Shown piece by piece: positions 140-59,984 of a stretch of 64,000 nt of DNA; within the stretch, counting starts at the first letter, position 1; each line of letters starts with the position of its first letter. The DNA lies in NCBI GenBank assembly GCA_038496445.1, contig JALMLS010000510.1, positions 62,001 to 126,000 of the forward strand. Direction: 5' to 3'. This DNA comes from Trichosphaerium sp. ATCC 40318 (Eukaryota > Protista > Tubulinea). The notes under the pieces were generated by a model. The model had not been told where the DNA came from. It made no database searches and saw only the letters and a list, made by a program, of their open reading frames with translations. A program made the translations under genes and the position numbers.

Positions 140-934
140 ATGAGTGCAAGTCCAGTAGAAAAGAGTGCAATATCGCTACTATCAATGCCAGTGGAGATAG
201 TTGTTTGTATTCTGAAGAAAGCTGACATAATTACAATGATGTCGGCGGCTTATACTTGCGATTTTTTATCACGTGTTGCACGTGGCCATTTAGTTTTTCC
301 TAATCGTCGTCCTCAAGTCTTATTGACAAGTTCTAAGCACATGAAGGAGATCTCGAATCTGATATCTTTGCCGTTTATTGACATTGTTTGCTATTTCGGA
401 ATGGTTGATGAAGACTTAAAGAGGCTGTCTGGTGCTACCTCTGTAAATCTTCGTTTCTGTAAGCGTATAAGTGATAGAGGTATATCATACCTTGCTGGTA
501 TTCATAAAATAGATCTGGCAGAGACTGATGTTTCTAATAAGGGTTTGAAAGCATTGGCAGGCGTTCACACTATAACTTTATCGAATTGTAAAAAAATTGG
601 TGATAAGGGTATAAAAGCACTTGCTGGAGTTCATACTATATATCTAGATCATACATCCATTACAGATAAGGGAATAAAGGCATTACAAGGAGTACAGAAG
701 ATTATATTAACTAACACGAAAGTTACAAACAAAGGAGTAAAATTTCTTGTTGGTGTGAAGTATATTGACGTTAGTTTCACTTCTGTAGATGGTAATGGTA
801 TTAAATACCTAGTAGGAGTACGTAAAGTTATTGCAAAAGGTACTACGATAAAAACAAAGGATATGTATCGCATCATTGGGTCATGTAAAGAACTTGTATT
901 ATCAAGTGGTGTTGTAACAAAAGACAACTTTTAA
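140..934 (+). CDS. F-box + leucine-rich repeat protein ('GVHTI' LRR family), intronless
   Basis: Single 264-aa ORF. N-terminal F-box (LLSMPVEIVVCILKK...AAYTCDFL) followed by about 7 repeats of GVHxIxLxxTxxTDKGIKAL. Confidence 0.85.
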   Translation: MSASPVEKSAISLLSMPVEIVVCILKKADIITMMSAAYTCDFLSRVARGHLVFPNRRPQVLLTSSKHMKEISNLISLPFIDIVCYFGMVDEDLKRLSGATSVNLRFCKRISDRGISYLAGIHKIDLAETDVSNKGLKALAGVHTITLSNCKKIGDKGIKALAGVHTIYLDHTSITDKGIKALQGVQKIILTNTKVTNKGVKFLVGVKYIDVSFTSVDGNGIKYLVGVRKVIAKGTTIKTKDMYRIIGSCKELVLSSGVVTKDNF

Positions 935-1328
935 TCAATAATAATGTAGTCCCCTTGATTCACTTACACGTGCTACAGTTCGTACCGTGTTTAAGTTGTT
1001 CGTTCAAACTACATTAAACGTGCACTAGAGAATAGCAACAATCTCTTACGACACTGTTCGCAGCATTGAGTGGAGCGGCTGCGAAAAAAAACGAATCACT
1101 ATTTTTACAACAGTGCCAAGATACATAGTAACAATCACATGTCTTATTTTCTAACCAAAAAAACTCCGCCTACCGATTTCATTATCCAATACATAGCACC
1201 ATTAGCATCCCTTCTACAACGGGTCTTTTTTAGACCATACACGCACAAAATCACAATCCATCTTAAAGATTTTTAACCATATCTTTATTATATCTCGCCT
1301 TTAACCACCAGAGCACACACAACTAAAA

Positions 1329-3200
1329 ATGAAGGTTATTTTACTCCTAGCAGCATTACTGCTGTTTTTTGTATCAGCACAAGAGATTCTAGATGATTTT
1401 ACAGACTTTGGACAGCTAACAGCAAGCGCAGATGGCCAAACAGTCGAAGAAACTGTCAGTGGACCTGGTATTCTTGGGGGATCGCGTCTAATGGAGGTTA
1501 CAAAAGTTTCTGGTGGTTCAACCTCTTTAGAAGTATCCTGTACTACTGTAGCTGGCTTTTTCGCTCTTAGTACAGATGTAACTGTTATTGGTGGTTGTCA
1601 ACTTACCTACGCTGGTCCTTCAGGGACAGGCTTCAGTCCACCTATTAATTTCTTACAATACGGTTGTGGTACGCATAAGAAGAAGTACTTCGCTCAAAAA
1701 GAGCGTCACAGAGTGTTTTTTTTTAGTCTCGAACGAAAAATCTTTTGAGATTTTTTTTTTTGTGCGCACGTGATTTTCGCACTTTGGGTTGTATTTTCTG
1801 ATCTTTTTTAGATTGCTGGAATATGCGTATTTTAGAGTCAGATAATAATGTTGGACTTGAAGTTGTAGCGAGAAGTGCTACAGCAGGTGATTTGATTAGT
1901 GCTTTTACTCTAGAAGTCGATATTGCTGAACCAACCGATGTATGTTTGCCTTTTGATACATCAATTGAGAATTATCAAAATATCGATCAAGTAGACTTTA
2001 CAGTTAATGGAAACGTTGCTAATGTTGATGTTAACCTTAACTACGTATGTTGTCAACCATCTCTATCTTGCTAGTACGTCAAACACAGTCAAAAAAAACT
2101 GAATGAAAAATGTCACAGAAAAAAACCAACAAACCGTTTTTTTTTTCAGCCTCCAAGATTCCTCCTTCCTCAGGAATTCTTTTTTGGTTGTCTATATCTC
2201 CGATGGTAGTACTTATTCATTGTTATAGTCACTCTATTGATCCACTCTTCGGCGCTGATCTAGACAACTTAGCACCTGGAAATACAATCAAATTGACACT
2301 CACTTGCCTAAACTACATCTCAATTCCAGCTGGTTTAGAAAGACTCCGAGCTTCATTCCCTTTTGATTCATCTATTGGTACAATGGACTCAGCCACAATA
2401 ATGTGCACTGGCGCTCGCGTAATCTCATACTCCGAAAAATCACGTGCTAAAGATTTATTAATAGGCAAACGGACAAACAGTCGCAAACAATGCCCTTGAA
2501 TTTAACAGCGAACTTGCTGATGGCGAACAAGTAACTTGCATGGTAAACGTTAACTTGTCTGGATCTGGAGACATAGATGATATTCAAGCTCGTATTCTCA
2601 CAGACAGAAGCGAACCAAACCATCCTATTCTATCTCACGCTATGGGAGACAGGTGCGTGACTTATACACTTTTTTTTTACCTAAAGTTTGTACTTGTAGG
2701 TCTGGAACACCTGATTTCTGCAATCCTCCTGTTTCTTCTTCCCTTATAGTGCAAAACCCTCCAACAACGTTACCTCCAACCACACTTCCTCCTACAACGT
2801 TGCCTCCTACAACACTTCCTCCAACGACACTCCCTCCAACAACGCTTCCTCCTACAACCTTGCCTCCAACTACTTTGCCTCCAACTACACTTCCTCCTAC
2901 AACACTCCCACCTACAACTTTACCTCCAACTGCTAGAGAGACAGTTTGTGTTTCCCCTCGCATCATTAATGGAGAGTGCGAGTACGTGATGACCAACACT
3001 TAAAACAAAAAAAACTGCCTGTACTACTTTTTGCTTACTTTTTTTTTTTTAGCTGTCAGACTTTCCCATGTTCTACGTATCCTGATGGTTCAATCCATTG
3101 TGAAACTAGTGAATGGTACTGCTGGTTCATAACAAGAGTACCTACTTCAGGTCGCTTCAGAGTATCTTACCGTGGACACATGTGCTACTGTGACATTTAA
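1329..3200 (+). CDS. Secreted protein with beta-rich domains, PPTTL mucin-like stalk and C-terminal Cys-rich domain (6 exons)
   Basis: Signal peptide MKVILLLAALLLFFVSA. GT-AG introns at about 1668-1811, 2074-2228, 2419-2464, 2653-2699 and 2982-3052 join the ORF fragments in frame; protein ends ...HMCYCDI*. Confidence 0.8.
2758..2931 (+). repeat. Coding 15-bp tandem repeat (PPTTL) x~11-12
   Basis: Directly visible cctccaacaacgtta-type units with synonymous variation. Confidence 0.95.
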
Positions 3201-3395
3201 ACAAAAAAGCAACACGTGAATCAAGACACATCTAAAACCCTTTCTCGTATCATTCAAAAAAAACCCACAACACTAATCGTTGCTTATGTTTGTTACTGAA
3301 ATAAAGTGGTATCCGTTGCACTAATCATTTGAGGCATTACATAGTGAGAAAAACGCAAAGCAGTGAGTGGAAAAAAATGTTGTAAGTTTTTTTTT

Positions 3396-5984: not shown

Positions 5985-6249
5985 CGTAAGGGTAACACAA
6001 CAAAGAAACGTTAAGTGAGCTATCCTTACGCAACAGCTTTCTACTTGGTCATATGAGTACACCAGAGCCGGATAATGACTATTACGGTACTGTTATGCTG
6101 TTAACGTCATCTTATTTTTAGTACAGACTATAACGACGCAGATAGTCAATTAGACTCTTACGAAGATCAAATAAGCACCGCTGTTAGTATTCATCAAATG
6201 TTGTAATCAACTTTAACTGCAAAAGTAGGCAAACGCATACTCTAGCTTC

Positions 6250-10965: not shown

Positions 10966-12254
10966 TGACTTAAACACAGGCTTTGAATCACGCCATTGTT
11001 TTAAAGAAAATCACGTGCCAGTAAAGGATCACGTGCAAATATAATAACTAGGTACCTTTTACGAGACGATATTATGCTTTCATCCTCAAAACGTGTTAAA
11101 ATCAATGACATTGCCAGTATGAGTTTACTACAACTGCCTACAGAGATATTAGCACATGTACTACGCCAAACAACCAAATCGCGATTTACAGCTTGCCAAA
11201 CATGCCATTTGTTTGCATCTATCGTCCATGATGTTATCGGATATGAAACTATCAGGATTACAACAGTAATTCAAGCGGAATCAGTTCTAAAACATCAGGG
11301 CATTCTCAGACACACTAGAATCGTGCTTGATGGTGGTTGCTTTGATGATAACATCATTAAAAAGTTTGCAAGAGCTCATACACTTGATCTTACGTTCTCT
11401 GATGTGACTGATGAAGGACTGAAAGCAATTGCAGGTGTTCATACCATTCTCCTTAGTCATACTTCAGTATCAGATGAAGGTGTAAAAGCACTTGCTGGTG
11501 TTCATGAAATTAGTCTTGGTAACACTTTAGTAACAGATGAAGGGATTAAAGCGCTTTCTGGAGTTCATACTATTGACCTTTATAACACTTCAGTAACAAA
11601 CGAAGGAATAAAGCTGCTCAACGGTGTTCACACTGTAAATCTTGTCGGGACAACAGTAACAAATGAGGGTATTAAAGCACTTGCTGGAGTACACACTATA
11701 AATCTTGGAGGCACTTTTGTTACAGATGAAGGTTTAATAGCACTTGCTGGTGTTCATACGATAAACCTTGGTGCCACTTTTGTTACAGATGAAGGCATTA
11801 AATGGCTTGCAGGTGTTCATACGATAAATCTTCTGGGCACTTTAGTCACAGATGAAGGCATTAAATGGCTTGCAGGTGTTCATGCAATAACTCTTGAGGG
11901 CACTTCAATTACAGATGAAGGTTTAATAGCACTGGTGTTCATACGATAAACCTTGGAGGCACTTTTGTTACAGATGAAGGCATTAAAGCTCTGAAGGGTG
12001 TTCATGCGATAAATCTTCAAAGAACTTCAGTTACAGATAAAGGCATCCAAGCTCTTGCTGGTGTTCATACGATAAATCTTGAGGGTACTTCAGTAACAGA
12101 TGAAGGCATTAAATGGCTTGCAGGTGCTCATACGATAAACCTTGGAGGCACTTCTGTTACAGATGAAGGCATTAAAGCACTTAAAGGGGCAGATTACATT
12201 GATGTCAGGAATACTCATGTAACAAAAGAAGGAGCTGAAGCACTAATTGGAACC
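10966..12254 (+). repeat. Direct segmental duplication, copy 1 (~110 bp upstream + F-box-LRR); partner 15786-16894
   Basis: Shared upstream sequence (ctttgaatcacgccattgttttaaagaaaatcacgtgccagtaaaggatc), near-identical N-terminus and C-cap; similarity ends at gcactaattggaacc. Confidence 0.9.
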
Positions 12255-12302
12255 TGTGGCTCTATAAATTTAACAACTGGTGAGAGAAATAGCACAGCCT
12301 AG
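11074..12302 (+). pseudogene. F-box + LRR gene (GVHTI family) with a 4-nt deletion frameshift at ~11933
   Basis: F-box LLQLPTEILAHVLRQ and 21-aa repeats. At ~11933 gcactggtg replaces the usual gcacttgctggtg. Repeats and the C-cap continue in another frame to TAG at 12300-12302. Confidence 0.8.
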
Positions 12303-12548: not shown

Positions 12549-13719
12549 CTAACTGATAAACAAGTTAAGACAACACAAGAATACCAAAAAGTTGACCACT
12601 AAACAACAAATAGAATTTAACGTATTTGATGAGGAGGGTGTAGCTACAGGTGCACTTGGCGTTTGTGTTGTTGGTGCAGTTGTTGGTGTTGCGGTTGTTG
12701 GTTGTACTGTTGTTTGTGATATTGGAACTGTTGGAACAGCAGTTGTTGGTGCTAGTGTCGCTGGAAGTAGCATTGGAGGTTGCGTTGTAGGAGGTTGCGT
12801 TGTAGGAGGTAGTGTTGTAGGTGGTAATGTTGTCGGAGGGGACGTTGTTGGAGGTAGTGTTGTGGGTGGTAATGTTGTTGGAGGGGATGTTGTTGGAGGT
12901 AGCGTTGTTGGAGGTAATGTTGTCGGAGGGGACGTTGTTGGGGGCAGTGTTGGAGGGAGCGTTGTAGGAGGTTGCGTTGTTGGAGGTAGTGTTGTAGGCG
13001 GTAATGTTGTTGGAGGGAGCGTTGTTGGTGGGGACGTTGTTGGAGGTAACGTTGTTGGAATCAATGTTGGTATCTCAAAACTTACAGAAAATTTATGTGG
13101 GGGTAAGCTTGACTGTGCCGCAGTTACAAAACTACAATACGAAAGAGTTTATATAAATTAACAGAGATTGTGCTATTCGAACATACCTGAATGACGTTGA
13201 ATCGAAAGTGATATTAGTTGGAGGGTTTGTAAAATTATGTGACAATATAGTAAATCCTCAAAGAAACGTTAGAGTACTTAGTTAGGCAAGCTCTAAATAT
13301 AGCATGTTTGGATAGGTACCTCCTATTACTGGTTGATCCATCACACACTCCATTATAAGAGTTGCTGTTTGGCCACTCGTGAAGGTTTCAAGGTCGTATT
13401 GTAAGGAATTTGAGTTAATATCAATTGTATGCTGTATTGAACCTGTAACTAGATACTCTATAGCCGTATCATTAACGATAAAGTTAGGGTTGTTTGGTTC
13501 ATTAGAACTAGAAGATAAAAAATCATTGAAGCCTGGAACACGCAATGTACATATCCCTGAATCGCCTTCGCCTATGTGGATAGGTTAATGAAATGTTACT
13601 AAAAACAGTGCAGCACTCTTTGGTTGTTGTAGCGCTATACAGCTTCTTTGAAATATGTACGTACTTAGAGAAAGCGTTAATGTGAACAGAGTACATAAAC
13701 ATAGAAGTGCTTTAATCAT
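12549..13719 (-). CDS. GPI-anchored mucin-like surface protein, copy A (signal peptide, beta-domain, long PPTT stalk, hydrophobic C-terminus); 4 exons
   Basis: MIKALLCLCTLFTLTLSL signal and three GT-AG introns giving an open frame. About 19 PPTT(L/S/Q) units; ends SSSNTLNSICCLVVNFLVFLCCLNLFIS*. Confidence 0.8.
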
Positions 13720-13804
13720 CGTGAGAAAATGATAACAATAGATCATCTAATTGACAAAAATAGTAACCAAAATAAAAATTTCAATTAAAAAAAAACTGTT
13801 GCAG

Positions 13805-15900: not shown

Positions 15901-16912
15901 ATGCTTTCATCCTCAAAACGTGTTAAAATCAATGACATTGCCAGTATGAGTTTACTACAACTGCCTACAGAGATATTAGCACATATACTACGCTAAACAA
16001 CCAAATCGCGATTTGCAGCTTGCCAAACATGCCACTTGTTTGCATCTATCGTCCATGATGTTATCGGATATGAAACTATCAGGATTACAACAGTAATTCA
16101 AGCGGAATCAGTTCTAAAACATCAGGGCATTCTCAGACACACTAGAATCGCGCTTAATGGTGACTTTGATGACAATATTATAAAAAAGTTTGCAGGTGTT
16201 CATACTATTCTCCTTAGTCATACTTCAGTATCAGATGAAGGTGTAAAAGCACTTGCTGGTGTTCATGAAATTAGTCTTGGTAACACTTTAGTAACAGATG
16301 AAGGGATTAAAGCGCTTTCTGGAGTTCATACTATTGACCTTAAGGACACTTCAGCAACAGGTAAGGATAGTAAAGCGCTTACAGGTGTTCATACAATTTA
16401 TACTTGCTAACACTTTAGTCACAGATGAAGGCATTAAATGGCTTGCAGGTGTTCATGTGATAAACCTTCGGGGCACTTCAGTTACAGATGAAGGTTTAAA
16501 AGCACTTGCAGGTGTTCACACTATTGATCTTTGTATAACTGCTGTAACAGATGACGGCCTTAAATGGCTTGCAGGTGTTCATACAATAAACCTTGGAGGC
16601 ACTTTTGTTACAGATGAAGGCATTAAAGCTCTGAAGGGTGTTCATACGATAAGTCTTCTGGGCACTTTACTTACAGATGAAGGCATTAAAGCTCTTGCTG
16701 GTGTTCATGTGATAAATCTTCAAAGAACTTCAGTTACAGATGAAGGCATTAAAGCTCTTGCTGGTGTTCATACGATAAATCTTGAGGGCACTTCAGTTAC
16801 AGATGAAGGCATTAAAGCACTTAAAGGGGCGAATTACATTGATGTCAGGCATACTCTAGTAACAAAAGAAGGAGCTGAAGCACTAATTGGAACCGGCATT
16901 TTTTTATTTTAA
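15901..16912 (+). pseudogene. F-box + LRR pseudogene (GVHTI family), paralogue of 11074
   Basis: CAA>TAA stop at 15994-15996 within the F-box and a +1 frameshift at ~16401; 10 GVH repeats plus C-cap. Confidence 0.85.
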
Positions 16913-17166
16913 TTTGCTCCCAAATCTAAGCTGAATACATCAAGCTGTAGCTCTACTGAAAGGTGACGGATGGTAGTCATTTTTCATTAGATTGTTAACA
17001 TGTTTAAGGGTAAAAAAGCAATCACCTAGAACTTGGCATTGTATGTAATCCTAATTAAATAAATATGCTCGAGATTGTTTATTCTTGTTTTTCCAACAAT
17101 AAAGTACAGTAGTCCTAAAAGCAAATTCTTGAATTTGAGTACTTTTTCACGTGATTTCAGGACTCC

Positions 17167-18302
17167 TCAGAATTTCTGAGTCCCTGCTTTTTCCAGGACT
17201 CTCTAACAATACAAGTCATAAGCTCATCTACATTTCGACATGTCTTGGCTGACGTCTCAAAGAAAGGAACCTTGTATTGATCTGCCAGAGCTTGAAACAC
17301 AATTATGAGAAGATGTAAATTTTTTTATTTTATATCAAATGCTTGGCTCACCTTTCCCTTCTTGAGTACTCACTTTTCTTCTTCCATCAAGATCCACTTT
17401 ATTCCCAGCAATAATAACTGGTATCTTGTATCAATAATTAGCTTACAAGACTTTCACAATATCCAATTTACCTTTTCGAAATCAAGTGTTTCTTTTACCC
17501 TCAAAATATCTGGTATATGTGTTGAGATGCATTCTTCAAAACTCTGTCTATTGAGTATAGAATACCCGACAACGAACATATCATATTCTTGTAGATACGC
17601 TGGCCTCAAAGCAGAGTACTATGAAATTCTTACATAAACGAATAGACCTGTGCAGCTGAGTACTTACCTCTTCCTGCCCGGCAGTATCAAGAATTTCTAT
17701 ACGAATGAGCTTTCCATCCACCATGTATTTCTTGCTGCAATGAAATGAGCTGTCACAAAGTACCTACTGTTCACAGCGTACGCATAAGACTAAATAGAAT
17801 ATTAATTTCATTGCTACAATCAAGTGGCATCACGTACGTCTTCAATAGTTGGATCATAATTTGGAACCTACAAATCGTATTTTAACAAGAAAATCAAACC
17901 GTTTCGAATCACGTGCGAATTCGTTGGTCATAAATTGGATAATGAAAGCAGACTTGCCAGCGCCTGTAACCATTAATTATTTTCTCACGAAAAACAATTA
18001 CTACTTGACATACCGCCAACACCAATAAAACATACTTTCATGCTAGCGTCGACGCCTCGAACGAAGTTTAAGTTCTGTCAGTGATTAGAAACTTACAAAC
18101 AACAAGAAAAATGTACCCTATCCTTTGCTATGAGTTTAACTACCGCCTCGCATTGTTTACAAACAGTTTTGATATCAATAAGGGTATTATTACTACATTC
18201 ATCCAATACCGCCTTCAATACTTTTCTTGGTAACTGTAAAAGCGGAAAAGACTTTTTAGAACGCTTTTTGTTCTTTTTTGTTTTCCTAATCTTATTACCC
18301 AT
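17167..18302 (-). CDS. F-box / Ras-family GTPase fusion protein
   Basis: Exon 1 is MGNKIRK...LLQLPRKVLKAVLDEC...IKTVCKQ (F-box). Spliced exons give GVGGAGKS, YDPTIEDSY, DTAGQEEYSALR, GNKVDL and ETSAK; ends KAGTQKF* with no CAAX. Confidence 0.85.
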
Positions 18303-29087: not shown

Positions 29088-30438
29088 TGACGTCTAACGA
29101 AACAACAGAACAAGAAAAAGAACCAGGTAATGTTGTAAGTACGTAATTATCCTAATTGTACAGTTTGTCAGGATTCTACGTTACCTACTGAAGTATGGAG
29201 TATAATAATCGCTAAAATACATCAAATACCTGATGTAGTGTCTGTTGCATGGACTTGTTCATTATTTACAACCCTGTGTTCGAACAAACTGTCTGAAGAA
29301 TCAAAGTCAACTGGTAGTGCAAAAATAGTCCTCAACACAATTTTTTTTTGACTGCTGTTACAGGTGTGTATGACTACAGCCATGTAAAGAAAGATAAGTT
29401 CCAAAGAGCTTCAGCTCACGTGTTGTTGTTGGGTATGTCATCAAATTATAAAAAATCACGTGCGTTTTTGCTAATGTTTATAAATGAAGAAGAACTCAAG
29501 AAGCCAAAAGAAAATAATACTCAAGAGCATCCTTCCAAAAAAGTTTCTTTCTTCAGAGCACTTCTTGGAAAAAAATCTCAAAAGCATGAGCCTCAGGAAC
29601 CTTTGAGATACTTTGACAAGGTCCCTGTATCTTCGGGCTCTTCAATAGACATTGGTTTGATGGGCGACGCACGAGCTGGTGAGCGTTTGCAGTCATTGAA
29701 AGGTTAACAAAAAAAAAGGTTGCACGCAGTTGGTAAAGAGGTTCACCGAAAATACGTTTAGTGAAGTCAGCCAATCAAGGAATGGCGATTCTAGCACAGT
29801 AAAATAGTTTTTGTTTGCCCAACATAACCCAGTTTTAGGAGGATACAACTATTCGGTTTGGCAATGCTAGCTTGACTTGTACTCTGGTGAGTTTTGTGTT
29901 TTGTTTTAGTTTGTTGACATGCCTTCAGCGACACCCGCGCTTGTATACTTTCAAGTCTGTCCAGGGATACTTGGGGAAAGAGAATAGATGTTTTTTGGTT
30001 TGTTGTGACACTACCAGCGAATTCAGTACGTCCAGTACATTCAGATTACTTCAAAAGTTTTTTGTGTTTTACAATTCAGCTTAAACTTTATTTAAGGCTG
30101 GGACAGAGTCACAGATAGATGGCTTCCTGATATTTTGGCTATTTGTACTGGCAAACCAATCATTGTTATTGGACTTCTAAAAACTGATTTGAAGGAAGAA
30201 TGTAAAGTATCAATTGAGAAAGTGAAGGTACCTCTTCGCACAAATCGATTTTATGAAAAAAAAACCCCAAAAAAAACCAAAGGTTGATTCATGTTTATTT
30301 TAGGCGTATTGCAAATTACACAATATGTGTGCAATAGAAACTAGTGCTAAGACAGGAAGAAATGTTAAATATGTATTTGAATACATTGCCGAAGCATATC
30401 TAAGATCAATTGTCAACAAAGTTGAAGAAGAACAATAA
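29088..30438 (+). CDS. F-box + degenerate Rho/Rab-like small GTPase (pseudo-GTPase)
   Basis: F-box LPTEVWSIIIAKIHQIPDVVSVAWTCSLF; C-terminal CFLVCCD...WLPDILAICTGKPIIVIGLLKTDL...IETSAKTGRNVKYVFEYIA. No intact GxxxxGKS or DTAG recovered; middle exons uncertain. Confidence 0.7.
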
Positions 30439-32468: not shown

Positions 32469-33613
32469 CTATTTGAAAACCTTATCCCAGAACTTTTTCT
32501 TCTTCCTGGAATTAGGGTCCAGTATCTCATCTTCGCGCTCAACATTGACATATTTATATTTACGACGTACTCTCCCGTCATCATAAACTAACTTGTGCTC
32601 TCCTTCTAAGTTACCATCAACGTGACAACTGCTTTCATGTAGTCTACCGTTTTCAGACCATTTTTTGCATTCGCCTTTTTGAATACCATTGACGTAGTGA
32701 CAATGTTCCCTCAATTGACCTTTTAGATACCAACGCTTACTCTCCCCTTCAAGGACGCCATTGACATAATATTGAAGGTCACATAATTGACGGTTAATGT
32801 AGTACAACTTGTATTCTCCATTAAGCTTGTTGTTTGAGTAACAACATTTTATCTTTAATTGCCCACCTTCGTACCACTCTATGTGACCTCCTTCTCGTAT
32901 ACCATTTTTATAGTTATACTCTCTCTTTAACTGACCATTTTCATACCATTCTTTGTGCACTCCGTGTGGTACATCACGTCTGAAATGATACAACACACAT
33001 AATCTACCACATCTATAACGTTGATCTAAAAACTTTGCTTCTTCGCTATTCACTTTGTACCACGCCTTGTACTCTCCTTCTCTTTCCCCGCCAAGGTAAT
33101 AATATTGTTCCAACAGTGAACCGTCATCATGATAAATTGTATACTCACCTTCAAGTCTACCAGTCATATAAAAACAAAGTACTCCCAATTCACCAGACAA
33201 ATGCCAATGTCTGTACTTTCCTTCTCTTTTGCCGTTGATGTACTTACACATCTCCTTTAACTTGCCGTCAGTGTACCATCTCTTACAATCTCCGTGCAAT
33301 TGACCGTGTTTCCAACACTCTGTAGCGACAACTAGACGTGAATCTGTAGTGTGAAGTTTTTTCCATTTTCCATTTTTTTCCAAATCGTAATCGAACCTTG
33401 TTGACATTGCTGTTTGTTTTGACAAAAGAGGAACTTTGACATAAAAATCAAGGTCGTAATCGATTATATCCAGTAGTAGTTCAACTGGAAGGTTCGAGAA
33501 GTAACACTGACGTGAGTCTGCCTGAGCCTATCAGTACACATTAGAAACTAACCACGAAAAGACGCAAACAGTCCGTTAGTTTTATTTTTATTTACCTTTT
33601 GCTTTTCTGCCAT
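32469..33613 (-). CDS. F-box-like + MORN-variant repeat protein
   Basis: Short exon MAEKQK is spliced (intron ~33528-33595) to AQADSRQCYFSNLPVELLLDIIDY, which is in frame with the 318-aa ORF of GxxKxWYxNGQLxxxxxYxNGxxE repeats. Confidence 0.8.
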
Positions 33614-33967
33614 GTGATGTGGATATTGTACTTGATCAACCGTTTTCACTGTATTTTTAGTCTGAACACGTCCTGGGTTTATGTACACGCTTAATAGAAC
33701 GTTTGTCTACTGTTGCTAGCGAGCTAGCGGGTTCTGTCGTACTTAAAGTAGAAACGCCTTAACAAAACTGGATTTTTGTTGGTGACTGCAATCTACTGTT
33801 ACGAGAAAAGGTGCGGGGTACGAGTTGTAGTTAACTGTGTTTTATTATCTAAGTACATTACGATTATCGTGACGTCTACCTGCTGTTTATGATGTTGTAA
33901 GGTGGGAATCAATCAGTTAGCGTAGTCTTCTTCAACTAGAATCACTTGACTACCTTACCTTCTTACA

Positions 33968-39240: not shown

Positions 39241-42200
39241 TTACACGAATATAATATCATTACTCGGATCTTTCCTATGAGCAGTAGAACTTCTTGACCT
39301 TGGTTGTTGCCCACCAGAAAGTTGTGCAATCTGTTGCATCTTAAACATAATATCACCTTCTTCTTGATCAGGCTTAGGCTGTTCAGCTGTTGATTCATCA
39401 TCACTTGAAGAAGCAGCAACATCTTCTTTGGCAGTAGCATCTTTCGAAGCTTCAGCTTGGTGCTCAGCTTCAGACCCATCCGGGTCAAGTTTTCCCTTTG
39501 ACTTTTCGAGCCTCTTAATCAACTCTACTAAGTCATCCATTTGCTCATCTTCACTCTCACCTGCTGCCATGCTCTCAGATGGAGGATTATCGAGCATTTC
39601 TTGTAGCTGTTCCATCCTAGTACCCTCACTATCTTTGCTCTGGTCCATCTGTGATTGAGACTCGAATCTAGAATCCGCTGATCGTACAGAGTACGGTGCA
39701 GATTCCTTACGAGCACCAATACCTCTTGCTGAAAATATTCTGCGTTCGGAATCAGAACCTAGTATGAACACATGAGTAAACAGAAAAAAAAAATTAAAAA
39801 AAAAAAATAAGGCCTTGGTCTTCGTACGTTGTCGCTCTATGGCTTGAAGTTTATGCCATAAGTCAATCTTACGGCGTAAGAGTTGCTTCCAAGAGTCACA
39901 GGAAGAACTAGATGGCGCTTGCATCCAGTACTTTCGCACTTTTGTATTAATGTAGAACGAATGTCGTTTACTACAAAAACAAAAAAAAGTAAGCAACAAA
40001 TATTTGCCAAAAGCAGACATTGACATGACTGCCGGTATTGTCGGAAAACAAAAAGAATAACTCGTACCCAGGGTGTGAATCGTTGTCCGGGCTAATAGTA
40101 GCATCTTTGAGGCTAATAACACCACCCAAGTCTACAAACTAGCGCAAAAAAGTGTTAGTAATGAAAAAAAAAAGAGATGATTGTGCTTCTAAACAAAAAG
40201 TTGGCTTACCCTATCGCTTGAATGTGGTTTTTTACGTAAATAATACATATCATAATCATGCAGTATAAACCACAACTTCTTCCAGTGCTGTACGAATGCA
40301 CCTACAGGCCTACTTTTAGAACCAAAGCAAATGGAGGAAAAAGGTACATTGTATGTACATACCTTTTTTAGCCAAGTAGCCTTCTTTCTCCTTTTTTAAT
40401 CCAAGAAGGAAAGGTAACTCATATACGGGTGTCTTTTTACCCATAAGGCTACCCTGAATTTTAATTTTTTGTTCTTCAACGAGTGCAGCCAAGTCAGTCT
40501 GTCGCAACAATTTGTCAATACAAAAAAGGAAAAAAAAAAAGATGTATGAAGATATTGTAGATTTAGGTATACCTTTGCAGTCTTAACCCTTTCACCACTG
40601 ACACCAAACTCTCCAATGACGTAATCAAAAAACTGCTCTATACCCTGAGGAGCAACTTCAAGATCGGTCATACAGCCAACTACAACGTCATCTCTTAGTA
40701 AGAAAAAAAAACCAACAAAAAAAAATCACCAAGGTGGTGGTTTTTATTAAAATGCGTACCAAAGTAACCCAAAGCCCTGCTTACTAATCTAGATGTATAC
40801 GCTATAATCTTTGGAGAGAGCGCAATATCATCACCTCCAATTTTTTCTGTAAATTCGGTAGAAATGCCGTCTAGACAAGAAATAAATATGACACACAAGT
40901 CAAACTACTAACAACAAAAGAATTAAGAATTAATCCTTACCCCAAAAGTACTGCTCCCAAAAAGCTAGACTAAGCCATACACGATGTCCTCGTATAAACT
41001 CCCTCAATGGTACGGATTTCTTACTTTTACAGCAAATGACATTTGCGTATTCTAGTACTGTCTTTGCCATCAAGAAATCCACTCTGAAAAAAAAACTTTA
41101 GACAAAAGATACAGTTTGAGTCTCAACAGCATTGTTCTTCAAGTACCTCTCCTCAACGTCCACATCTGCCAAAAGCAAGTCAAGGAAGTACAATAGTACA
41201 TCAAAAGAGTCTTGAACAAGAGAAATCTCATTACCACTGCTCGCGCCAATAGCTTCAGCACATCTCAAAAACAAGAACAAGAAAATTCGTTTCCCTTGCT
41301 CCTGAGTTAACATAGTCGAATATTCCTCTTTTAATGAGGCTGACATTTCTTCAGGTTGCTGTGAAGTGAATATCATCATGAGACTAAACCAAAAAACGTT
41401 AGTACCACCTCTAGAGAAGATATAACCAACAACTGACGTACGTATCTCTCAAGTGGAAAATGAGCCTCTTGTTTATCTTCTTTTCATAGTAGAAGAATCC
41501 AAAAGGTTCACTATCACCTTCACGAGTCGTAGTCGCTATTTCAAGGCGTCTTTTAAGACCAAGAAGGTCTGCATCATCTTTCTTCAAGTCTAAAAAGATA
41601 AAATTTAGTAAAAATAGGGTTTTCACTGAAAACAATCTATTAATACTCACCTGATATTGCAGAATTATCAACGTCATAACACGTGTTCAAAGCATATGTT
41701 TTTGCCTAATAAAATAAGCTCTAGTAGTCAAAACAAAAGAGAAAAAATTGCAAGTTGTAGTTAAGTACGCACTGTTTCAACTTGTTTTGACAATGCTACA
41801 ATATGCTCTTCTAATCGCTTGGCCATCATCGTATCACCACCTGGTGACCTTGCTGACAGAGGAGCTTGTCCAACTATTTCTAGAGGCTCTAAAAATGAAT
41901 TGGTCATTATTACAACAAAAGATCTATGCGAGAGAGATTGCCATTACCTTCACTAACTGAGCCCTTCCTTGATGATTTTTTGTTAAATCTCATAGACTTA
42001 CGCCATGATTTCTTGGCCTTTTTTAAATCGAGATCAGGCATATTAATATTAGTATTTGACCTGGTATGTCTAACACCATCTCTAGGAGGTGATGTCATCT
42101 TTGGAGGTGTTGAAGACATATCAGAACGATTAAATTCAGATGACAATTTACGCCTCGAAGATCCTCTCTGAGACGACCTTAACGAAGCCTTCTTGTCTGG

Positions 42201-47731: not shown

Positions 47732-49447
47732 TCACTTTTGTAGAGAAGGTAGCAACCCTGGCATAGGTAACTCTGGAGACGGTTCCAGATCTGGTAGAGA
47801 ATCGAAATCTCCTATTTCTTGAGTAGGTTCAAGCTCTGGCATTGAACTTGAATCGTCTTCAGACTCTGTGACTGTCCTCCCTAATTCTTGAGTACGTTCC
47901 AACTCTGGCATTGAACTTGAGTCTTCTTCTGACTCTGTGACTGTCCTAATGTTATCAAGAGCTTCCTGTTTAGTGATAACAACAAAGCCACCATTTGGTA
48001 GACTTTGTACGACATAACCTGGAGGTATTACAGTACCATCATGATACATTTCTTCCTTTACTAGAACACCATTTATATCCCAATCCCTATACCATCCGCA
48101 AAATTCACCTTCTTGAATCCATCTCTCTGCACTTCGTTGACCATTATCGTACCACTCAACATGTACACCTTCTCTTATATCATTTTTTTTCTCTATTATA
48201 CTTCGAACCTTTCCATTCTCATGCCATGTCTTGTGTTCACCTTGTATCTTGTCTCTACGACAATAGTATAACTCTTGTAATTGTCCATTAGGATACCACT
48301 CTTTATGCTCACCTTCTTGGCGTCCACGCCTGAAAAACATTTGCATGTGCTGAACTCCATTTTCATACCAACGAGTTACAGTTCCTTCAACACGACCTCT
48401 TCTGATATGACACTGTTCCTTTAAAGTACCATTTCTATGATACGTACTTACTCTACCAACCCTTTCACCATGGCTAACATAATACTCAATCTTGACTTGA
48501 CCGTTACGATACCACTCTTTGACATCTCCTTTTTCTTCACCTCGTTTAAACTTTTTTTGTATTTTCATCTGACCATTAGTAAACCACTCTGTTGATAGAC
48601 CTTGACGTATACCATTCTTGAAATTCTGTTCTGCCTGTATTTGACCAGACTCATACCAAATTTGTTGTTTTCCATGTCTGATACCTTGTTTGAAGTTCCC
48701 TTCCCTGTGCTGTGTTCCATCCTTGTACCACATCTTCACAGTGCCATGTCGCCTATCCCTTTTCATAAAACTCTCTGTTTGAAGCTGTCCATTCTCAAAC
48801 CAACTCTTGTGAGGACCTTCCCTTTTCCCTGCAACAAGTTGTCCACGTTTTTTTATCTTACCATTCTCATGCCAAAACGCCCACTCTCCTTCCGGCACAC
48901 CATTATGTACAGTCTGTATAGCAGCGAGATTCCCATTTGGATGCCATTCCCTCATCGTACCGCCCATAACACCGCGTTCTGCAAATTCAATCCTCCGTCT
49001 CAACGTTCCGTCTTCGTACCACTCTGTGGACCTTGTATCGCGTGTTTCTACTGCTACAGCACCGCTTGGGTACCATTTAATCCAAGGACCAACGCGATTA
49101 AGATCATAGTCGAAATGAGTCTTCACAGCAGCTTCCTTTGATAACGTGTGCCTATTTAATGCGTAAACAACGTAAAAAGAACGATTTTTAAAGTTGTTGT
49201 ACCATTTCGTAAACGGTTCTATCCCAAAAGTGCAAATATACTGCTGTATCTCGTTTGGCAAGTCTAATAAGCGCGTTGCGAGTAGTCTAACTACAGTTGA
49301 TTGTAAGTGTACAAAAAAAAGCCTAGATCGTCTCGTACAGTCTCTAGGCATTGCTTTAGCCCTAGGGGGTGCAAATGATGGTCTGTTCGCTAGAATAAAG
49401 GCCGCATCAACTTCGATAGATTCCTCGTTTAGGTGGAACTTCTTCAT
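47732..49447 (-). CDS. F-box + MORN-variant repeat protein, intronless, with acidic repeated tail
   Basis: 571-aa ORF; F-box core LLDLPNEIQQYICTF; about 14 repeats of GxxxxWYxNGQxxxExxFxxG. Confidence 0.85.
   Translation of the reverse strand: MKKFHLNEESIEVDAAFILANRPSFAPPRAKAMPRDCTRRSRLFFVHLQSTVVRLLATRLLDLPNEIQQYICTFGIEPFTKWYNNFKNRSFYVVYALNRHTLSKEAAVKTHFDYDLNRVGPWIKWYPSGAVAVETRDTRSTEWYEDGTLRRRIEFAERGVMGGTMREWHPNGNLAAIQTVHNGVPEGEWAFWHENGKIKKRGQLVAGKREGPHKSWFENGQLQTESFMKRDRRHGTVKMWYKDGTQHREGNFKQGIRHGKQQIWYESGQIQAEQNFKNGIRQGLSTEWFTNGQMKIQKKFKRGEEKGDVKEWYRNGQVKIEYYVSHGERVGRVSTYHRNGTLKEQCHIRRGRVEGTVTRWYENGVQHMQMFFRRGRQEGEHKEWYPNGQLQELYYCRRDKIQGEHKTWHENGKVRSIIEKKNDIREGVHVEWYDNGQRSAERWIQEGEFCGWYRDWDINGVLVKEEMYHDGTVIPPGYVVQSLPNGGFVVITKQEALDNIRTVTESEEDSSSMPELERTQELGRTVTESEDDSSSMPELEPTQEIGDFDSLPDLEPSPELPMPGLLPSLQK
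47810..47947 (-). repeat. 69-bp coding tandem duplication (RTVTESExDSSSMPELExTQExG x2)
   Basis: Two near-identical units visible in both DNA and protein. Confidence 0.9.
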
Positions 49448-53879: not shown

Positions 53880-54916
53880 ATGGATGACCATATGGAATTA
53901 CGTATGAGAAGTAAATCAAGTACTAAGATACCTTCAAATCAACAACAAGAAAAAAATAGAATCAAACCAAACAGAAAATCCTGGCTAAGTGAACGCAACC
54001 TAATAACCCTACAAGCTGGTACAACAATGTTATAATAGACTACATACGTTTACTCATTATTGTGCGCAGCATCTGGATTGGTTTTTGCAACCTTTCTAAG
54101 CGTACACTTGGTGTCTGCTTTCGCATGTAATTTTGGACCAGAGTATATGTATGCTATTCAGGTAATCGGCTTGTGCATGCTATTCTAATAGTATTCTAGA
54201 ACGTGTTGCGAACCTACTACCAATATCCCATGATAGAGCTTACAGCGATTGTAGCAGCTCTTGGTGTACACCTATTCTCATCCATCATACGCTGGAGGAG
54301 ACGTCGAAAAACACTATCTCAAGTGTCTTGGGCTTCACGGTTACACAGATACTCAGCGTACGTTCTATCAACCGCTATACCACGTGTTTTCTATTTGTGA
54401 CTTTTTATAAGGTACTTCTTACTTTTTGAACTTACTCCACACGTGGGATTTGCACGTGTATTCCCGTTTCTTTATAATTTTTCGGCAAACTACTATTTTG
54501 TCCACTTGAGTATTGTTTACTGGCCTTACTACTTTTACCCGTACTATGCACTCCTAGCAGCTTGTGGGTAAGTACAATTCAGTCTATAAAACCCCTTGTA
54601 GCCATGACTGCCTATTCAGGTTCTATCACATGGCGTATGGAGTTTTCAAAGCGTTGAGAGTGTTAGGCATTAAGATACCTCAACAAACTTCTTTGAATAG
54701 CAACTACTTTTTAGTCTTGGCATTGGTTGGTCTTCTTGTTTCTATTTCGACGGTACGTGACACGTGCACATGTAATTTTTTTTTATGTGTTTCTAGACTA
54801 TTGCTTTTGGTGGAAATTATGTAGCAAAGGATGCTTTGGACCTCAGTGAGTTTCCTTTGTTTAAGAGCAAATACGAAGAAATAACTCCTGCTGCGTTTTT
54901 ACCATGGAAAAATTGA
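53880..54916 (+). CDS. Multi-pass membrane protein, DUF1691/MCP1-like
   Basis: SGLVFATFLSVHL, RTYYQYPMIE, LHRYSAYFLLFELTPHVGFAR, FYPYYALLAACGFYHMAYG (conserved TM His residues). Confidence 0.65.
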
Positions 54917-54985
54917 ATCTTGAAACCAACAAAAACTAAAAGTTGCTGGCTGCAGCACACTTTTTTATGTTTATAAACAATTAGT

Positions 54986-57900
54986 CTATAAATCGTTTAG
55001 CGGTTTTGTATCGCTGTAATTTGATTGTATTAAAGCAACCTCTGTATCTTCAAAAGTGCCTGCTAACACGTGAGTTACATTTACAAAAAACGGAAAAAAC
55101 TCTGAGAATCTTTACCATTGTTAGTTGATGAATCATCATCGTCCAACAACTTTTTATCATCATATTTTGTATCACGTTCATGTACTTCAACAACACGTGC
55201 TAATTTAATTAGTTAAACGAGACAAAAAATAAAATATAAGAGTACCTGTGTAGCGCCACCATATGACATACAAAAGAATTGATGATAACACAAAGATACT
55301 AAAAGTTACTCCAAATCCAGGCCACCCTAAAGGATAACGCTTAATACAATATAGCTTGGGCATTACATGATTATAATGGCATACTTTGAAGGGAAGCACA
55401 TATAGCAAATAAAAAGAGTGATACTTGAAATGGCCATGCAACAAAGTACGCTGTGATCGCATCTCGAACATTTTCAGCGAATATCAGTTTTTTAGTTGTT
55501 CTTGTCAACCGCCTGCTCTGTTTTGGCCAATATCCTGGAGGCCTCGTTTGTTTATAAAACTAAACAAAAACTAGATGTTAATCACGTGTTCACCTAGTTT
55601 TGGCAGTGGCTCTTCGTGCGACAAGACAATACAGTAAACATACATTAAATAGAACTTGTTCATCTGTTGGTGATGATAGATACATTCCAACAATCATACA
55701 GATCAAAGAAGCACCTACTGACTATTTCTAAAGTTAACACACCAATATGGAGTTACTATAGGTCATTTTTAGAGAACACGTGCCCAAAGAAGAGACATAT
55801 ATGTCGGACTGTTTCTGAAGGCGAAATGTTGTATAGTCGCAGCGGCCATGCCTCCTATAGTACCTATGTAATACAATTAATAAAGCCCAATTCTGTACAA
55901 CGCATTTTTGACCTAACCTGAAGCATAAGCGATACCTACAGTTGTCATATTAGAATAGAATGCGAAAAAGGGGATGTACCATTGACTCTCCAATAAAACC
56001 ATCTTGCAACCATCGGTACATACAATGCAGAACTCAATGCAACTTGTAGAAATCCCCATACATCATTAATGTTTGAGAATGCGAGACTGACAGCCTACAC
56101 GTTTGGTTGATTGTGCAAAAGAATCCAAAAGACTAAAAAAAAAAAAAAAGAATGCTTACTACACCTGCAACCGTGATGACTAGAGATGATACACGGCTAT
56201 GTATTAATAGTTTTGTTTGTGATGCTCTAGGGTTAATAAAAGCTTGGTATATATCTTTGACATAGTAGGCAGCACCAGCGTTCACATTGCTAAGAAAAAA
56301 GAGTTTGAGTTCATTTTTATGTTCAAAGATTTGTTTAGTCTCCCTAACCTATCAAAAGTAGACATCCCTGCAGCGACAAATCCGCTCACGAGGAACCTAC
56401 AGATATATCAATTACCAAATACAGTTCTATCACGTTTTGGCTCTGACAGCAAGAATTCCAGGAAACTTTGAAAGTGTTCTTTGTTATGCCGTACCCACGG
56501 AGTACAATTGGAGTAAATTGTGAAAGCACTATTGGTACAACCCTCTCTGGGTCTTCTATAAAATTTTCTTGGTTGTAAGTATGTCCAAGAAGTACCAATG
56601 CTACTGTAAAAGGCCAACGAAAAGTTAAAAGTACTATCCATATCATAGACATTTTAGCAACTTCTTCATCGTCTTTTGCTGCAAAATATCTACAAATCAA
56701 CAAAAAAAGTCACGAAATCGGTGTGTCTAGAGATCTTATATGACATGATTTTTATACCTTTGTGCACCATATCCTATAGGTCCTATACGAATAAAAACGT
56801 TAAGTAACAAAATTAAAACAGTTGTGTACCTCCTGTGCCTTCAAGAAACAAACGAATCAAATAAACCAAAGTTGTCAAAATCAATAAATCAAAAGTAGCA
56901 TATTGACTATCTGGCGGTACACCAAGTTTCCATCTAGGTACCTAAAACAAAACCACAAAGAGTTAAACTCAACAAAAAAAAAAATCACGTGTCACTGTGA
57001 ACACTTACAGGATTGCTCCAATCCTTGTATGATATCGAATAATTCACAAACTTTAATTCTTGTGCATCATCTTTTGGCGGTAATGCTATATTGAGCGTTT
57101 CTGGTACATTGCTCTTGATGAATGCATATATGATAAACGCAATACCGGTTAAAAGGACAAGAACAGCTTGAAAGACATCAGTCCACACAACACCTAACAC
57201 AGAATTGTCAAACACGTGTCAACCAAAAAATACTTCAAAATAGAAGTGGACGTAGACAGTTCACTAGAAATATGATCACGTGCAAGGTACCTTGAAATCC
57301 ACTCACTACAGTGTATATAACAGCAAATAGACTGATCGCTGCGCCAGCATAAAAGTCTACACAGGGTACTTAGTCGGAGACAAAATCGAGACCCCATTTT
57401 TTTTTTTATTTACCTTGCATTCTACTATCATGAACGCCAATATCTTCCCACGGAATAAACTCAGATAAAAACTTTCCGCTTCCAATAGCAAAGTAAGTGA
57501 CACCTTAAAGTTGGAGCATTAAAACAGCATTGTAAGTTTACACCAATGTTTTCTGTTGCACCTATAATTATCGTGATAATGTTCGATACTGCGCTTATAA
57601 CACGTGCTATCTTTCCTTGTAAGCCATTACCAAACCGAAGAACCATCCACTAAAAGAAGCAATTAACACGACACATTGTGCCCATGTGCGTTCCAAAAAA
57701 AGAAATAAAACAAGATGCACATGCCTCTGCTGTTGTCATTACTTTTGCTCTTCTAGTCCATTTTCCTAAAAAAAACGCACGTGATTAAAAAAAAATAGCA
57801 ACAAAAAATATCTTAACCCAACTCACCGAAAATAAGCATAAGAGCCATAGATAGAGTCACACCTCCTCTAAATTCTATGTAGAATCCTGTTTTCGACTGA

Positions 57901-58220
57901 TTTAGCTTACAAAACCTCAACGCTCGTAATACGCCGTTTTACCTTGTACACCTAACGCATACAAAAGTGCAGCGTTGATGGCAGTGCCAGAAATATCAAA
58001 GGAAGATGCCAATCCTACCAAAACGTTATTTGTCGTTTTTGAAGCCCTTGAACAAACCGGAAATGCCCAATGCCCACCATGGTAGTTTTCTGTTGCCTAA
58101 GAAAAAGCCTTCAATTGATTTCGAACGGGTTTTAGCTAGAATCGTTGGAAGTAGGCCAACTATGATTATTGATAGTAAATATATTGCCACAATGACATAG
58201 TCAACAACAGCAAGCGCCAT
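54986..58220 (-). CDS. Sodium:solute symporter (SSS/SLC5 family)
   Basis: VDYVIVAIYL, FFLGNRKLPWWALGISG, TTAEWMVLRFG, GVVWTDVFQAVL, FAAKDDEEVAK, GFVAAGMSTFD, LKWPGWRF; more than 15 exons. Confidence 0.92.
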
Positions 58221-58553
58221 ATCTGTAACAAAACGGGTAAAACATCGGTCAAATGCAGTCCCGAAACACTAAAAAGGAACAGCCTTATTTGTTCGTGATC
58301 ACGTGACTAGACTATAAGCGAGATAAATTGGTGTAATTGGGCTGACATAACCTTTTGCTGTATTTAGGCAGTGGAGGCTTACCACATGCAGATAGTGAAC
58401 ACAAACTCTGGTTGAAGTTAGTTGACTGCCGCTAGTTACAATTCATTCTGAAAACCAACAAGAATACATAGCAGCTTATGTACGAAGTGTTAAACCGTTC
58501 CTAATTGAAGACAACTCACATACAAAACTGTTTAGAGCTGATTGCTTTAACAA

Positions 58554-59984
58554 ATGGAAGAAAAAGATATAAACTATACAAATCAGTGTGTTTTCAGCCT
58601 CATTGCGCTACCTATTGAATTAATAGTGCATATTCTGAAACAAGGAACAAATACAATCCGTTCAGCCCAAACGTGCCACTTTTTGCGAGATATCATCCAC
58701 AAACATGTTGGATACGGTCACATCTATATTAGAAGCGAAGATGAGGTTCATATGCTTTCTGGTAGTGCATTGCTCCAGAACTCGATTATTGACATTCGTT
58801 GTAAATCAATAACAGATCAATGTTTAAAGGCATTGGCGGGTGTATATTACATTAGGTTGTGTTGTTGTACTTCAATAACAGATGAAGGATTGAAGGCGTT
58901 GGCACGTGTACACACTATTTATTTAACATCTACAAAAGTAACGGATTCGGGATTGAAGGCATTGGCAGGTGTACATAAAATCAATTTATATTTTTGTGAC
59001 AATATAACAGGTGAAGGATTGAAGGCATTGGCAGGTGTACACACTATTGACTTGGGTCATTGTACATCAATAACGGATTCAGGTATTACGGCATTGGCAG
59101 GTGTTCATGAAATCAATTTATCTAGTACAAAAATAACAGATGAAGGCTTGAAGGCATTGGCAGGTGTACACACTATTGACTTGAGTCATTGTAAATCAAT
59201 AACAGATTCAGGTATTACAGCATTGACAGGTGTGCACAAAATCAATTTATCGTTTACAAGTGTAACAGATGAAGGATTAAAGGCATTGAAGGGAGTACAT
59301 GAAATCAAATTGCAATCTTGTGTTTCAATAACAGACGAAGGATTGAAGGCATTGTCAGGTGTACACTGTATCAAATTGAGTCATTGTAAATCAATAACAG
59401 ATGAAGGATTGAAGGTGTTGGCAGGTGTGCACACTATTGACTTGAGTCATTGTACATCAATAACAGGTTCAGGATTGAAGGCATTGGCAGGTGTGCATGA
59501 AATCAATTTATCGTTTACAAGTGTAACAGATGAAGGCTTGAAGGTATTGGCGGGGGTACATTACATTGAGTTGCGTTATTGTAAATCAATAACAGATGAA
59601 GGATTGAAAGCATTGTCAGGCGTACACTATGCTAATTTGAATAATTGTAACCTTCTAACAGATTTGGGTATTGCAGCATTGGCAGGTGCACACACTATTT
59701 ATTTATCTGGCACAAGGGTAACAGATGAAGGTTTAAAGGCACTGGCAGGTGTACATGATATTAACTTGCGTTATTGTACAGGAATAACTGATGAAGGCAT
59801 TACGGCATTGGCAGGTGTACATGATATTGATTTATCATTTACACGTGTCACAGAGGAAGGTTTGAAAGCGTTGAAAGGTGTACATACCATCATATTACAT
59901 GGTTGCTTCTTAACAACAGATTACAATGGTATCAAGGCATTGACTGGTGCACATAAAATTGTACCTGATTATAAATACAGATGA
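58554..59984 (+). CDS. F-box + LRR protein (GVHTI family), intronless, intact, ~17 repeats
   Basis: 476-aa ORF; F-box LIALPIELIVHILKQ...AQTCHFL; mixed 21-aa and 22-aa repeats. Confidence 0.9.
   Translation: MEEKDINYTNQCVFSLIALPIELIVHILKQGTNTIRSAQTCHFLRDIIHKHVGYGHIYIRSEDEVHMLSGSALLQNSIIDIRCKSITDQCLKALAGVYYIRLCCCTSITDEGLKALARVHTIYLTSTKVTDSGLKALAGVHKINLYFCDNITGEGLKALAGVHTIDLGHCTSITDSGITALAGVHEINLSSTKITDEGLKALAGVHTIDLSHCKSITDSGITALTGVHKINLSFTSVTDEGLKALKGVHEIKLQSCVSITDEGLKALSGVHCIKLSHCKSITDEGLKVLAGVHTIDLSHCTSITGSGLKALAGVHEINLSFTSVTDEGLKVLAGVHYIELRYCKSITDEGLKALSGVHYANLNNCNLLTDLGIAALAGAHTIYLSGTRVTDEGLKALAGVHDINLRYCTGITDEGITALAGVHDIDLSFTRVTEEGLKALKGVHTIILHGCFLTTDYNGIKALTGAHKIVPDYKYR

Follow-up and report, generated by a model that had tools for sequence, protein, structure and literature searches.

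What kind of system is represented by the F-box genes that crowd one stretch of the genome of Trichosphaerium sp., a marine amoeba? The stretch analysed here, which we call the window, comprises 64,000 nucleotides (nt) of contig C134 (C134:62001-126000) and holds eight F-box or F-box-like genes, four of which encode leucine-rich repeats (LRRs), two MORN_2 repeats and two small GTPases. Searches of the 70.28-Mb, 642-contig assembly lead us to think it likely that these eight genes belong to three separate Trichosphaerium F-box families of adaptors for Skp1-Cul1-F-box (SCF) ubiquitin ligases, two of which are expanded. The expansion is real, large and lineage-specific, and the kind of system is one already known.

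The four LRR genes, named here for their first coordinates in the window, all lie on the plus strand and match Pfam LRR_6 strongly (E from 5e-13 for g140 to 4e-53 for g58554), with arrays at 140-934, 11074-11949 (and 11919-12299), 15901-16912 (strong from 16298) and 58554-59984. Their repeat unit is 21 amino acids (aa; 225 such units in 24 genes) or 22 aa long, with the consensus GVHTIxLxxTSVTDEGvKALA. Two of the genes are intact and single-exon: g140 (140..934), a divergent family member matched by the family hidden Markov models (HMMs) A2 and A6, encodes an F-box and six 21/22-aa units, and g58554 (58554..59984) encodes an F-box and 17 alternating 21/22-aa units. The other two are g11074 (11074..12299), a core 'QTCH' F-box-LRR gene that is split into an open reading frame (ORF) at 11074-11949 and a continuation at 11919-12299, and g15901 (15901..16912), a pseudogene and tandem duplicate of g11074 that survives as ORF pieces at 15901-15996, 16036-16410 and 16298-16912. 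Local HMMs built from paralogues elsewhere in the genome found exactly four LRR-family and two MORN-family loci within the window. Together with the Pfam LRR_6 and MORN_2 arrays and the F-box profile comparison described below, these searches bear out the original prediction, made from the letters of the window and its ORFs, as to both the number of F-box genes and their places.

The N-termini of these proteins differ in how readily they are recognised as F-boxes. That of g11074 scores 25.9 bits against the Pfam F-box, above the cut-off, and those of g58554 (18.7 bits), g140 (15.3 bits, F-box-like), the GTPase gene at 18302 (19.5 bits; cut-off 20.5) and the GTPase gene at 29160 (14.7 bits, F-box-like) fall below it; F-box families are nonetheless the sole Pfam matches for the N-termini of g58554, g140 and both GTPase genes. 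When the families were compared by hhalign with a profile of 20 diverse F-boxes of the Trichosphaerium genome that score over the Pfam cut-off, the LRR family and the GTPase N-terminal exons each reached 96.6% (E 6e-10) and the MORN N-terminus 87.7% (E 3.4e-6, over 49 columns), with a maximum of 5.9% among the reversed and 20 column-shuffled control profiles. An AlphaFold model of residues 1-225 of g58554 (pLDDT 88.9) places helices at 21-30, 32-38 and 42-51, followed by an LRR solenoid, and the top structural matches of this model in the PDB are the SKP1-bound FBXL2, FBXL17, KDM2A, KDM2B and Skp2 (E 1e-9 to 7e-7; 12-19% identity). For the LRR family, which this model represents, the three-helix F-box fold of Skp1-bound F-box proteins is thus predicted. 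The genome also encodes the SCF core, with Skp1 at three to four loci and Cullin at five or more. As SCF receptors, the LRR and GTPase genes are well supported and the MORN genes are probable.

The LRR, MORN_2 and GTPase parts had been described in the original prediction as three interchangeable substrate modules, a description that a comparison of the F-boxes themselves does not support. Each class has its own F-box signature (QTCH..ASIVHDxIGY in the LRR class, YICTFN..FTKFHTLSKxAAxNTHFD in the MORN class and LP.EVW...AWTC in the GTPase class), and the LRR and MORN profiles are alignable over only 15 columns. Because the F-box subtypes differ by class, the genes form three separate families rather than a single F-box with exchangeable modules, and we see no sign of module swapping. 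A sister F-box subtype with the pattern LPPE(I/T)LTHIL.YL.RKERIRAS.VSH.FN.IIR.NIGF gives the top Pfam F-box scores of the genome (35-40 bits) and occurs at C1:16231-16404, C385:5209-5379, C6:649319-649492, C179:63411-63575, C81:57141-57314 and C44:121715-121888; at C1 it adjoins a GVHTIxL unit, and it probably marks another large LRR subfamily.

Both MORN_2 genes lie on the minus strand. The first, g32469 (32469..33640), encodes an F-box-like N-terminus and a MORN_2 array at 32469-33425, and the second, g47732 (47732..49447), is a single-exon gene for an F-box-like and MORN_2 protein of 571 aa. Pfam assigns both arrays to MORN_2 (PF07661; E 4e-23 for g32469 and 4e-46 for g47732), and 20 paralogues contain 219 units of 24 aa. 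The N-terminus of g32469 (LPVELLLDII...LSKQTAMST) aligns with that of the MORN family, whose HMM A5 matches the gene (E 2.8e-22), and the sequence suggests that this gene probably has one 5' intron, preceded by a short exon near 33640 that would contain the start codon. No intron interrupts g47732 or any of the four LRR genes; the repeat-array genes have, as had been proposed, none or one. The N-terminus of g47732 matches F-box-like_2 at only 13 bits and has a 17-aa insertion within its F-box-like module; the protein ends in an acidic, Ser-rich tail, and a 98% copy of the gene lies on contig C388. A profile search of the PDB with the MORN N-terminus found no F-box, a result that carries no weight, as the same search also missed the validated LRR family. 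The hhalign comparison points to a probable, divergent F-box at the N-terminus of this family.

The third family is of another character. The gene at 17157..18302 (minus strand, about seven exons) joins an F-box exon (MGNKIRK...LLQLPRKVLKAVL) to about six further exons whose translation contains the motifs YDPTIED, DTAGQE, NKVD and ETSAK. Searched exon by exon, they are colinear with PF00071 (positions 43-79, 64-102, 107-128 and 128-159), and both this profile match and the G1-G5 order place the gene, exon-wise, in the Ras family. The protein starts with MGNKIRKTKKNKKRSKK, that is, with a myristoylation-type Gly2 and a basic patch, and a C-terminal CAAX is absent, so its membrane targeting may be N-terminal. 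The multi-exon gene at 29088..30438 (plus strand) joins an F-box exon (LPTEVWSIIIAKI) to a divergent Rab/Ras-like GTPase in which G3 and G4 look degenerate (GLLKTDL replacing GNKxD); only its G5 (ETSAK) exon and a paralogue (L044, 74% identity in the last exon) gave matches. The two F-box exons have two and seven paralogues genome-wide, the seven belonging to the gene at 29088-30438, and six paralogue loci that were retrieved carry GTPase exons, which brings the genome total to at least eight F-box-GTPase genes. These genes form a small, ordinary, intron-rich family that stands outside the expansion, and they would probably couple a nucleotide switch to SCF, by analogy with what has been proposed for Naegleria.

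The window had been proposed to sample an expanded, genome-wide repertoire, which is true of the LRR and MORN families and fails for the GTPase class. A search with the first 100 residues of g11074 gave 1,157 candidates genome-wide, of which the best 150 all have E < 5e-22 and mostly lie in open frames of 250-580 aa. At the DNA level, the exact motif PTEI-16 aa-QTC occurs 129 times (0 in the control) and exact GVHTIxL units 5,231 times (7 in the control). The 1.255-Mb contig C1 holds about 16 LRR loci, and because this density agrees with the unit count divided by some 13 units per gene, we place the LRR superfamily at about 700-900 loci. A second LRR subfamily, which has a 100-aa N-terminal extension, is represented by 87 further loci at E < 1e-40, and the MORN N-terminal signature LSKxAAxxTH is found 194 times (once in the control), indicating about 190 loci. 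The loci are unevenly spread: the four LRR genes of the window amount to about five times the genome average, in part through one tandem duplication, and the 243-kb contig C87 carries eight N-terminal matches where about 0.5 would be expected. The LRR and MORN_2 families are thus intron-poor, dispersed and locally tandem expansions. Two MMETSP transcripts, P0383 of the MORN family and P0121 of the LRR family, match the Trichosphaerium genome at 100%, each with an intron-sized gap, and so represent spliced messages; that they were relatives from other species was considered and rejected, since both map at 100%. A further member of the P0121-type F-box-LRR subfamily (46% identity, with one TGA inside the match) lies 5 kb to the left of the window at C134:55595-56737, and the local cluster therefore reaches beyond the window. 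Many loci are doubled, scoring identically on one large and one small contig (C294:20661-20945 and C459:1053-1337; C88:17040-17138 and C430:17197-17295; C98:73642-74292 and C421:2893-3543); these pairs are probably uncollapsed haplotypes, in which case the copy counts are somewhat inflated.

Within the window, the birth and the death of LRR genes can both be observed. The pseudogene g15901 lies 4,827 nt downstream of g11074, and 281 nt of it are 98% identical to 11055-11335, an identity that takes in the region upstream as well as the gene's first 280 nt and beyond which the arrays diverge. The two genes arose through a local DNA duplication that took in the upstream region. Two of the four LRR genes are disrupted, as first noticed in the window: g11074 has a 4-nt deletion near 11936, where the unit spacing is 185 (3x63-4) instead of 189, and its remaining LRRs and C-terminal cap run on in a different frame to 12299, with HMM matches on both pieces, while g15901 has a CAA-to-TAA change at codon 32 and a 1-nt insertion (unit spacing of 127, or 2x63+1, instead of 126). 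The same holds genome-wide, where about 22 (some 15%) of the best 150 of the 1,157 N-terminal candidates have open frames shorter than 200 aa and five have stops. Copies of the LRR genes are born by duplication and lost by stops and frameshifts. Between g11074 and g15901 lies a 15-nt tandem repeat (12549-13161); its minus strand encodes a mucin-like ORF of 171 aa, rich in Thr and Pro (TTLPPTTSPP...), with a hydrophobic tail at its end.

We then asked where the surviving copies differ. Across the 225 LRR units of 21 aa, the entropy is above 3 bits at positions 6, 8 and 9, 1.8 bits at position 4 and 1.6-1.9 bits at positions 11, 17 and 21, and the other positions are nearly fixed. In the LxxLxLxxN pattern, unit positions 4, 6, 8 and 9 are the exposed residues of the concave face. 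The MORN units are likewise divided into fixed and free positions. The repeat scaffolds are strongly conserved, and in each repeat a few positions on the surface are almost free to vary. In the six closest LRR gene pairs, which are not independent and whose repeats may be non-orthologous, the ratio of nonsynonymous to synonymous substitution rates (omega, or dN/dS) is 0.84-1.74 at the variable positions and 0.04-0.13 in the scaffold. In a young LRR clade (L025, C109:51529-53629; L028, C87:228782-230882; L029, C19:125783-127883; L031, C87:107848-109948), the synonymous divergence (dS) is 0.015-0.06 over the first 99 codons and about ten times higher, 0.16-0.32, over the arrays, a pattern that points to gene conversion in the 5' region or to 63-nt cassettes having been reshuffled. 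Of the proposed rapid diversification, the concentration of variation at predicted binding positions is supported. With omega about 1 at the variable sites and dS near saturation, the variation fits a diversifying binding surface and falls short of proving positive selection.

Such surface-focused variability, together with the size of the family, its pseudogenes and its clustering, as on C87, is what makes a dedicated intracellular immune repertoire a possible, if on balance improbable, explanation. Under it, variable LRR and MORN arrays would recognise proteins of giant viruses or intracellular bacteria and deliver them for proteasomal destruction, the amoeba being in an arms race with pathogens whose genes resemble its own. 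Expanded F-box-LRR families are indeed carried by giant viruses and by amoeba-infecting Chlamydiae, and nematode F-box genes have been interpreted along the same lines (PMC8120010). An omega not clearly above 1 speaks against it, as do the unexpanded Skp1, still at a few loci, and the marking, by Tekle et al., of at least several F-box and other virus-like gene models as not expressed. If, instead, the genes had been expanded by drift and encoded ordinary housekeeping or regulatory SCF adaptors that handle proteins of the amoeba itself, in the cell cycle or the complex life cycle, they would act on the endogenous substrates that are the general targets of F-box proteins. Tekle et al. suggest a cell-cycle link (PMC10521059), and the F-box-GTPases do resemble normal regulatory genes. 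A set of hundreds of paralogues with frequent pseudogenes, in which most differences fall on the binding surface, is nevertheless unlike conserved regulatory adaptors, and we consider this explanation unlikely.

A viral origin deserves separate consideration, since exchange with giant viruses had been part of the original prediction. The published analysis of the Trichosphaerium genome counts 1,568 gene models as virus-like; among those assigned to lateral gene transfer (LGT) from giant viruses, F-box and MORN are the commonest domains. It also lists TRSP3900, which by its number lies on C134 (scf.00134_167559 in that analysis), as LGT from Hyperionvirus (PMC10521059, 2023). In a Foldseek search of BFVD, g58554 first matched proteins of Hyperionvirus, Barrevirus, Tupanvirus, Pithovirus-like viruses and Catovirus (E 1e-17 to 1e-13, 23-40% identity), more strongly than any cellular FBXL in the PDB, the top match being Hyperionvirus A0A3G5A7S5 at 40% identity. 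A scan for an exact DNA pattern spanning two neighbouring units of 21 aa matched the giant-virus metagenome-assembled genome GVMAG-M-3300007519-48 and a 102-kb viral contig, in both cases within ORFs that encode an F-box and GVHTI-type arrays. The GVMAG ORF (L076:790-1863) is 41% identical to g58554 end to end, and that of the viral contig (L075:2765-3403) is 39% identical to g140 from the F-box onward. Another GVMAG ORF (L080:6030-6893) has an LPxD-type N-terminus and MORN_2 repeats that are 32-35% identical to those of g32469, and look-alikes found with a language model include Nucleocytoviricota clusters of both F-box+LRR and F-box+MORN_2 type. Viruses thus carry both architectures, and the similarity of the sequences argues for shared ancestry of the amoeba LRR family with the viral genes.

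Other searches for viral kin gave less. Pattern scans of IMG/VR and the JGI metagenomes for the family-specific N-termini returned nothing, which reflects a limit of the method, as other approaches did find viral kin. In a word search of a 5.8-billion protein set, the MORN N-terminus returned nothing and g47732 only bacterial MORN_2 arrays, and a full HMMER search with a profile of the N-terminus plus MORN drew 52,736 MORN proteins, the sole match spanning the N-terminus being the Trichosphaerium transcript P0383. Three IMG/VR candidates were set aside: a phage with MORN only (L041), a GVMAG protein that lacks an F-box and whose LRRs, of about 25 aa, are RNI-type (L053), and a simple repeat (L074).

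A maximum-likelihood tree was made of 28 N-terminal halves, two of them viral. The two viral rows pair (98/94) in an unresolved base beside divergent amoeba members, and the viral pair falls outside a clade (83/87) that unites the 20 core-family rows. Because the core clade stands apart, most copies would have been amplified within the amoeba; the tree points to an origin of the bulk of the LRR copies there. This bears on the possibility, which is how the 2023 paper reads them, that the genes are mainly viral host-manipulation genes that entered repeatedly and are now passengers or decaying. In its favour are the best matches to Mimiviridae-type viruses (30-41% identity), the scarcity of introns within an intron-rich genome (a mean of 8.7 introns per gene; PMC10521059), the listing of TRSP3900 and the prevalence of F-box and MORN among the virus-like models. 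The surroundings of the genes tell otherwise: the repeat-array genes are placed singly among ordinary intron-rich host genes (START-domain, PDI-like and GTPase genes), and GC content is flat across the window at 36-39%, with no virus-like island. The published genome has a GC content of 37.69% and 27,369 transcripts in 70.9 Mb, a density that predicts about 25 genes for the window (PMC10521059). The separate core clade, the lasting purifying selection implied by the scaffold omega, the splicing and expression of some members, and the local duplication behind g11074 and g15901, upstream region included, also count against it, and we regard such viral endogenisation as rather doubtful. A further open frame in the window, of 294 aa at 39241-40125 (minus strand), has an acidic, Ser-rich C-terminal half.

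We therefore return to three amoeba F-box families, two of them expanded, as the best explanation. The F-box would dock on Skp1-Cul1, the repeat array would recruit a protein for ubiquitination, and many variants would provide many specificities; the LRR family and the viral genes would descend from an old common ancestor, with most copies the product of duplication inside the amoeba. Several points weigh against this explanation. Between LRR units, synonymous sites are near saturation, so that unit-level dN/dS says little, and an omega of about 1 at variable sites is equally compatible with relaxed constraint; the tenfold greater likeness of the N-terminus than of the arrays in L025, L028, L029 and L031 means that aligned repeats may be non-orthologous. 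The locus counts are extrapolated, and duplicate contigs or haplotigs inflate them; the tree includes only two viral sequences, and its base is unresolved. For the MORN family, Pfam recognised no F-box among 18 members, apart from F-box-like_2 in a single one (13.8 bits), and the AlphaFold model of the N-terminus is poor (pLDDT 53), too weak for a structure search.

One plausible use of these families would be against viruses or intracellular bacteria. A bolder proposal is that close to 1,000 SCF receptors form a germline repertoire whose surfaces are diversified, through point changes and the reshuffling of 63-nt cassettes, so as to catch proteins of giant viruses and intracellular bacteria, with viruses holding captured copies as decoys or counter-weapons. 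We think this improbable; if true, it would amount to a protist innate immune system built on F-box/LRR proteins. Our results do not establish a new mechanism. They do indicate that perhaps 3% of the genes of a host amoeba encode F-box-repeat proteins of giant-virus type, where work on amoebae has so far centred on the F-box proteins of their parasites, and they offer a concrete system in which to ask who copies whom in the ubiquitin conflict between amoebae and viruses. They also call for caution in that counts of 'viral LGT' genes in the Trichosphaerium genome are inflated by within-genome duplication.

How do these families compare with known systems? As in the FBXL receptors (Skp2, FBXL2, FBXL17 and KDM2A/B), an N-terminal three-helix F-box directly precedes an LRR solenoid; unlike them, the amoeba proteins have units of 21-22 aa (GVHTIxLxxTxVTDEGxKALA) in place of cysteine-containing units of about 26 aa, and hundreds of paralogues in place of about 20. 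The Trichosphaerium F-box-LRR proteins would work like FBXL proteins but are of a distinct LRR subtype. For the F-box-GTPases, fusions of an F-box or BTB to ARF GTPases are a known parallel. Compared by architecture, a closer one is found in Naegleria, where an N-terminal F-box is joined to Rab-like, Rho or Ran GTPases in a set with divergent members and birth-and-death evolution (PMC8296547, Additional file 4), although Naegleria belongs to Heterolobosea rather than Amoebozoa and one Trichosphaerium gene, of Ras type (YDPTIED), has a lipidation-type signal at its N-terminus. The NEX1 family of Neochlamydia, symbionts of amoebae, comprises 138 paralogues in which the N-terminal F-box and a linker of about 50 aa are conserved and the number of LRRs varies, under dominant purifying selection (PMC4209131); these are bacterial effectors injected into the host, whereas the Trichosphaerium genes are nuclear. 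The F-box families of nematodes and plants share with those described here a lineage-specific expansion, birth and death, clustering and variation in the substrate-binding part (PMC8120010, PMC3719486), but use other substrate domains (FTH/FBA, kelch and others), and positive selection there is backed by population data. Last, the F-box+LRR and F-box-like+MORN_2 proteins of giant viruses (Mimiviridae/Klosneuvirinae-type and Pithovirus-like) pair together outside the amoeba core 'QTCH' clade and, in the pattern scans, have N-termini without QTCH..DxIGY and LSKxAAxxTH, but they share with the amoeba proteins the same architectures and the same 21-aa GVHTI unit.

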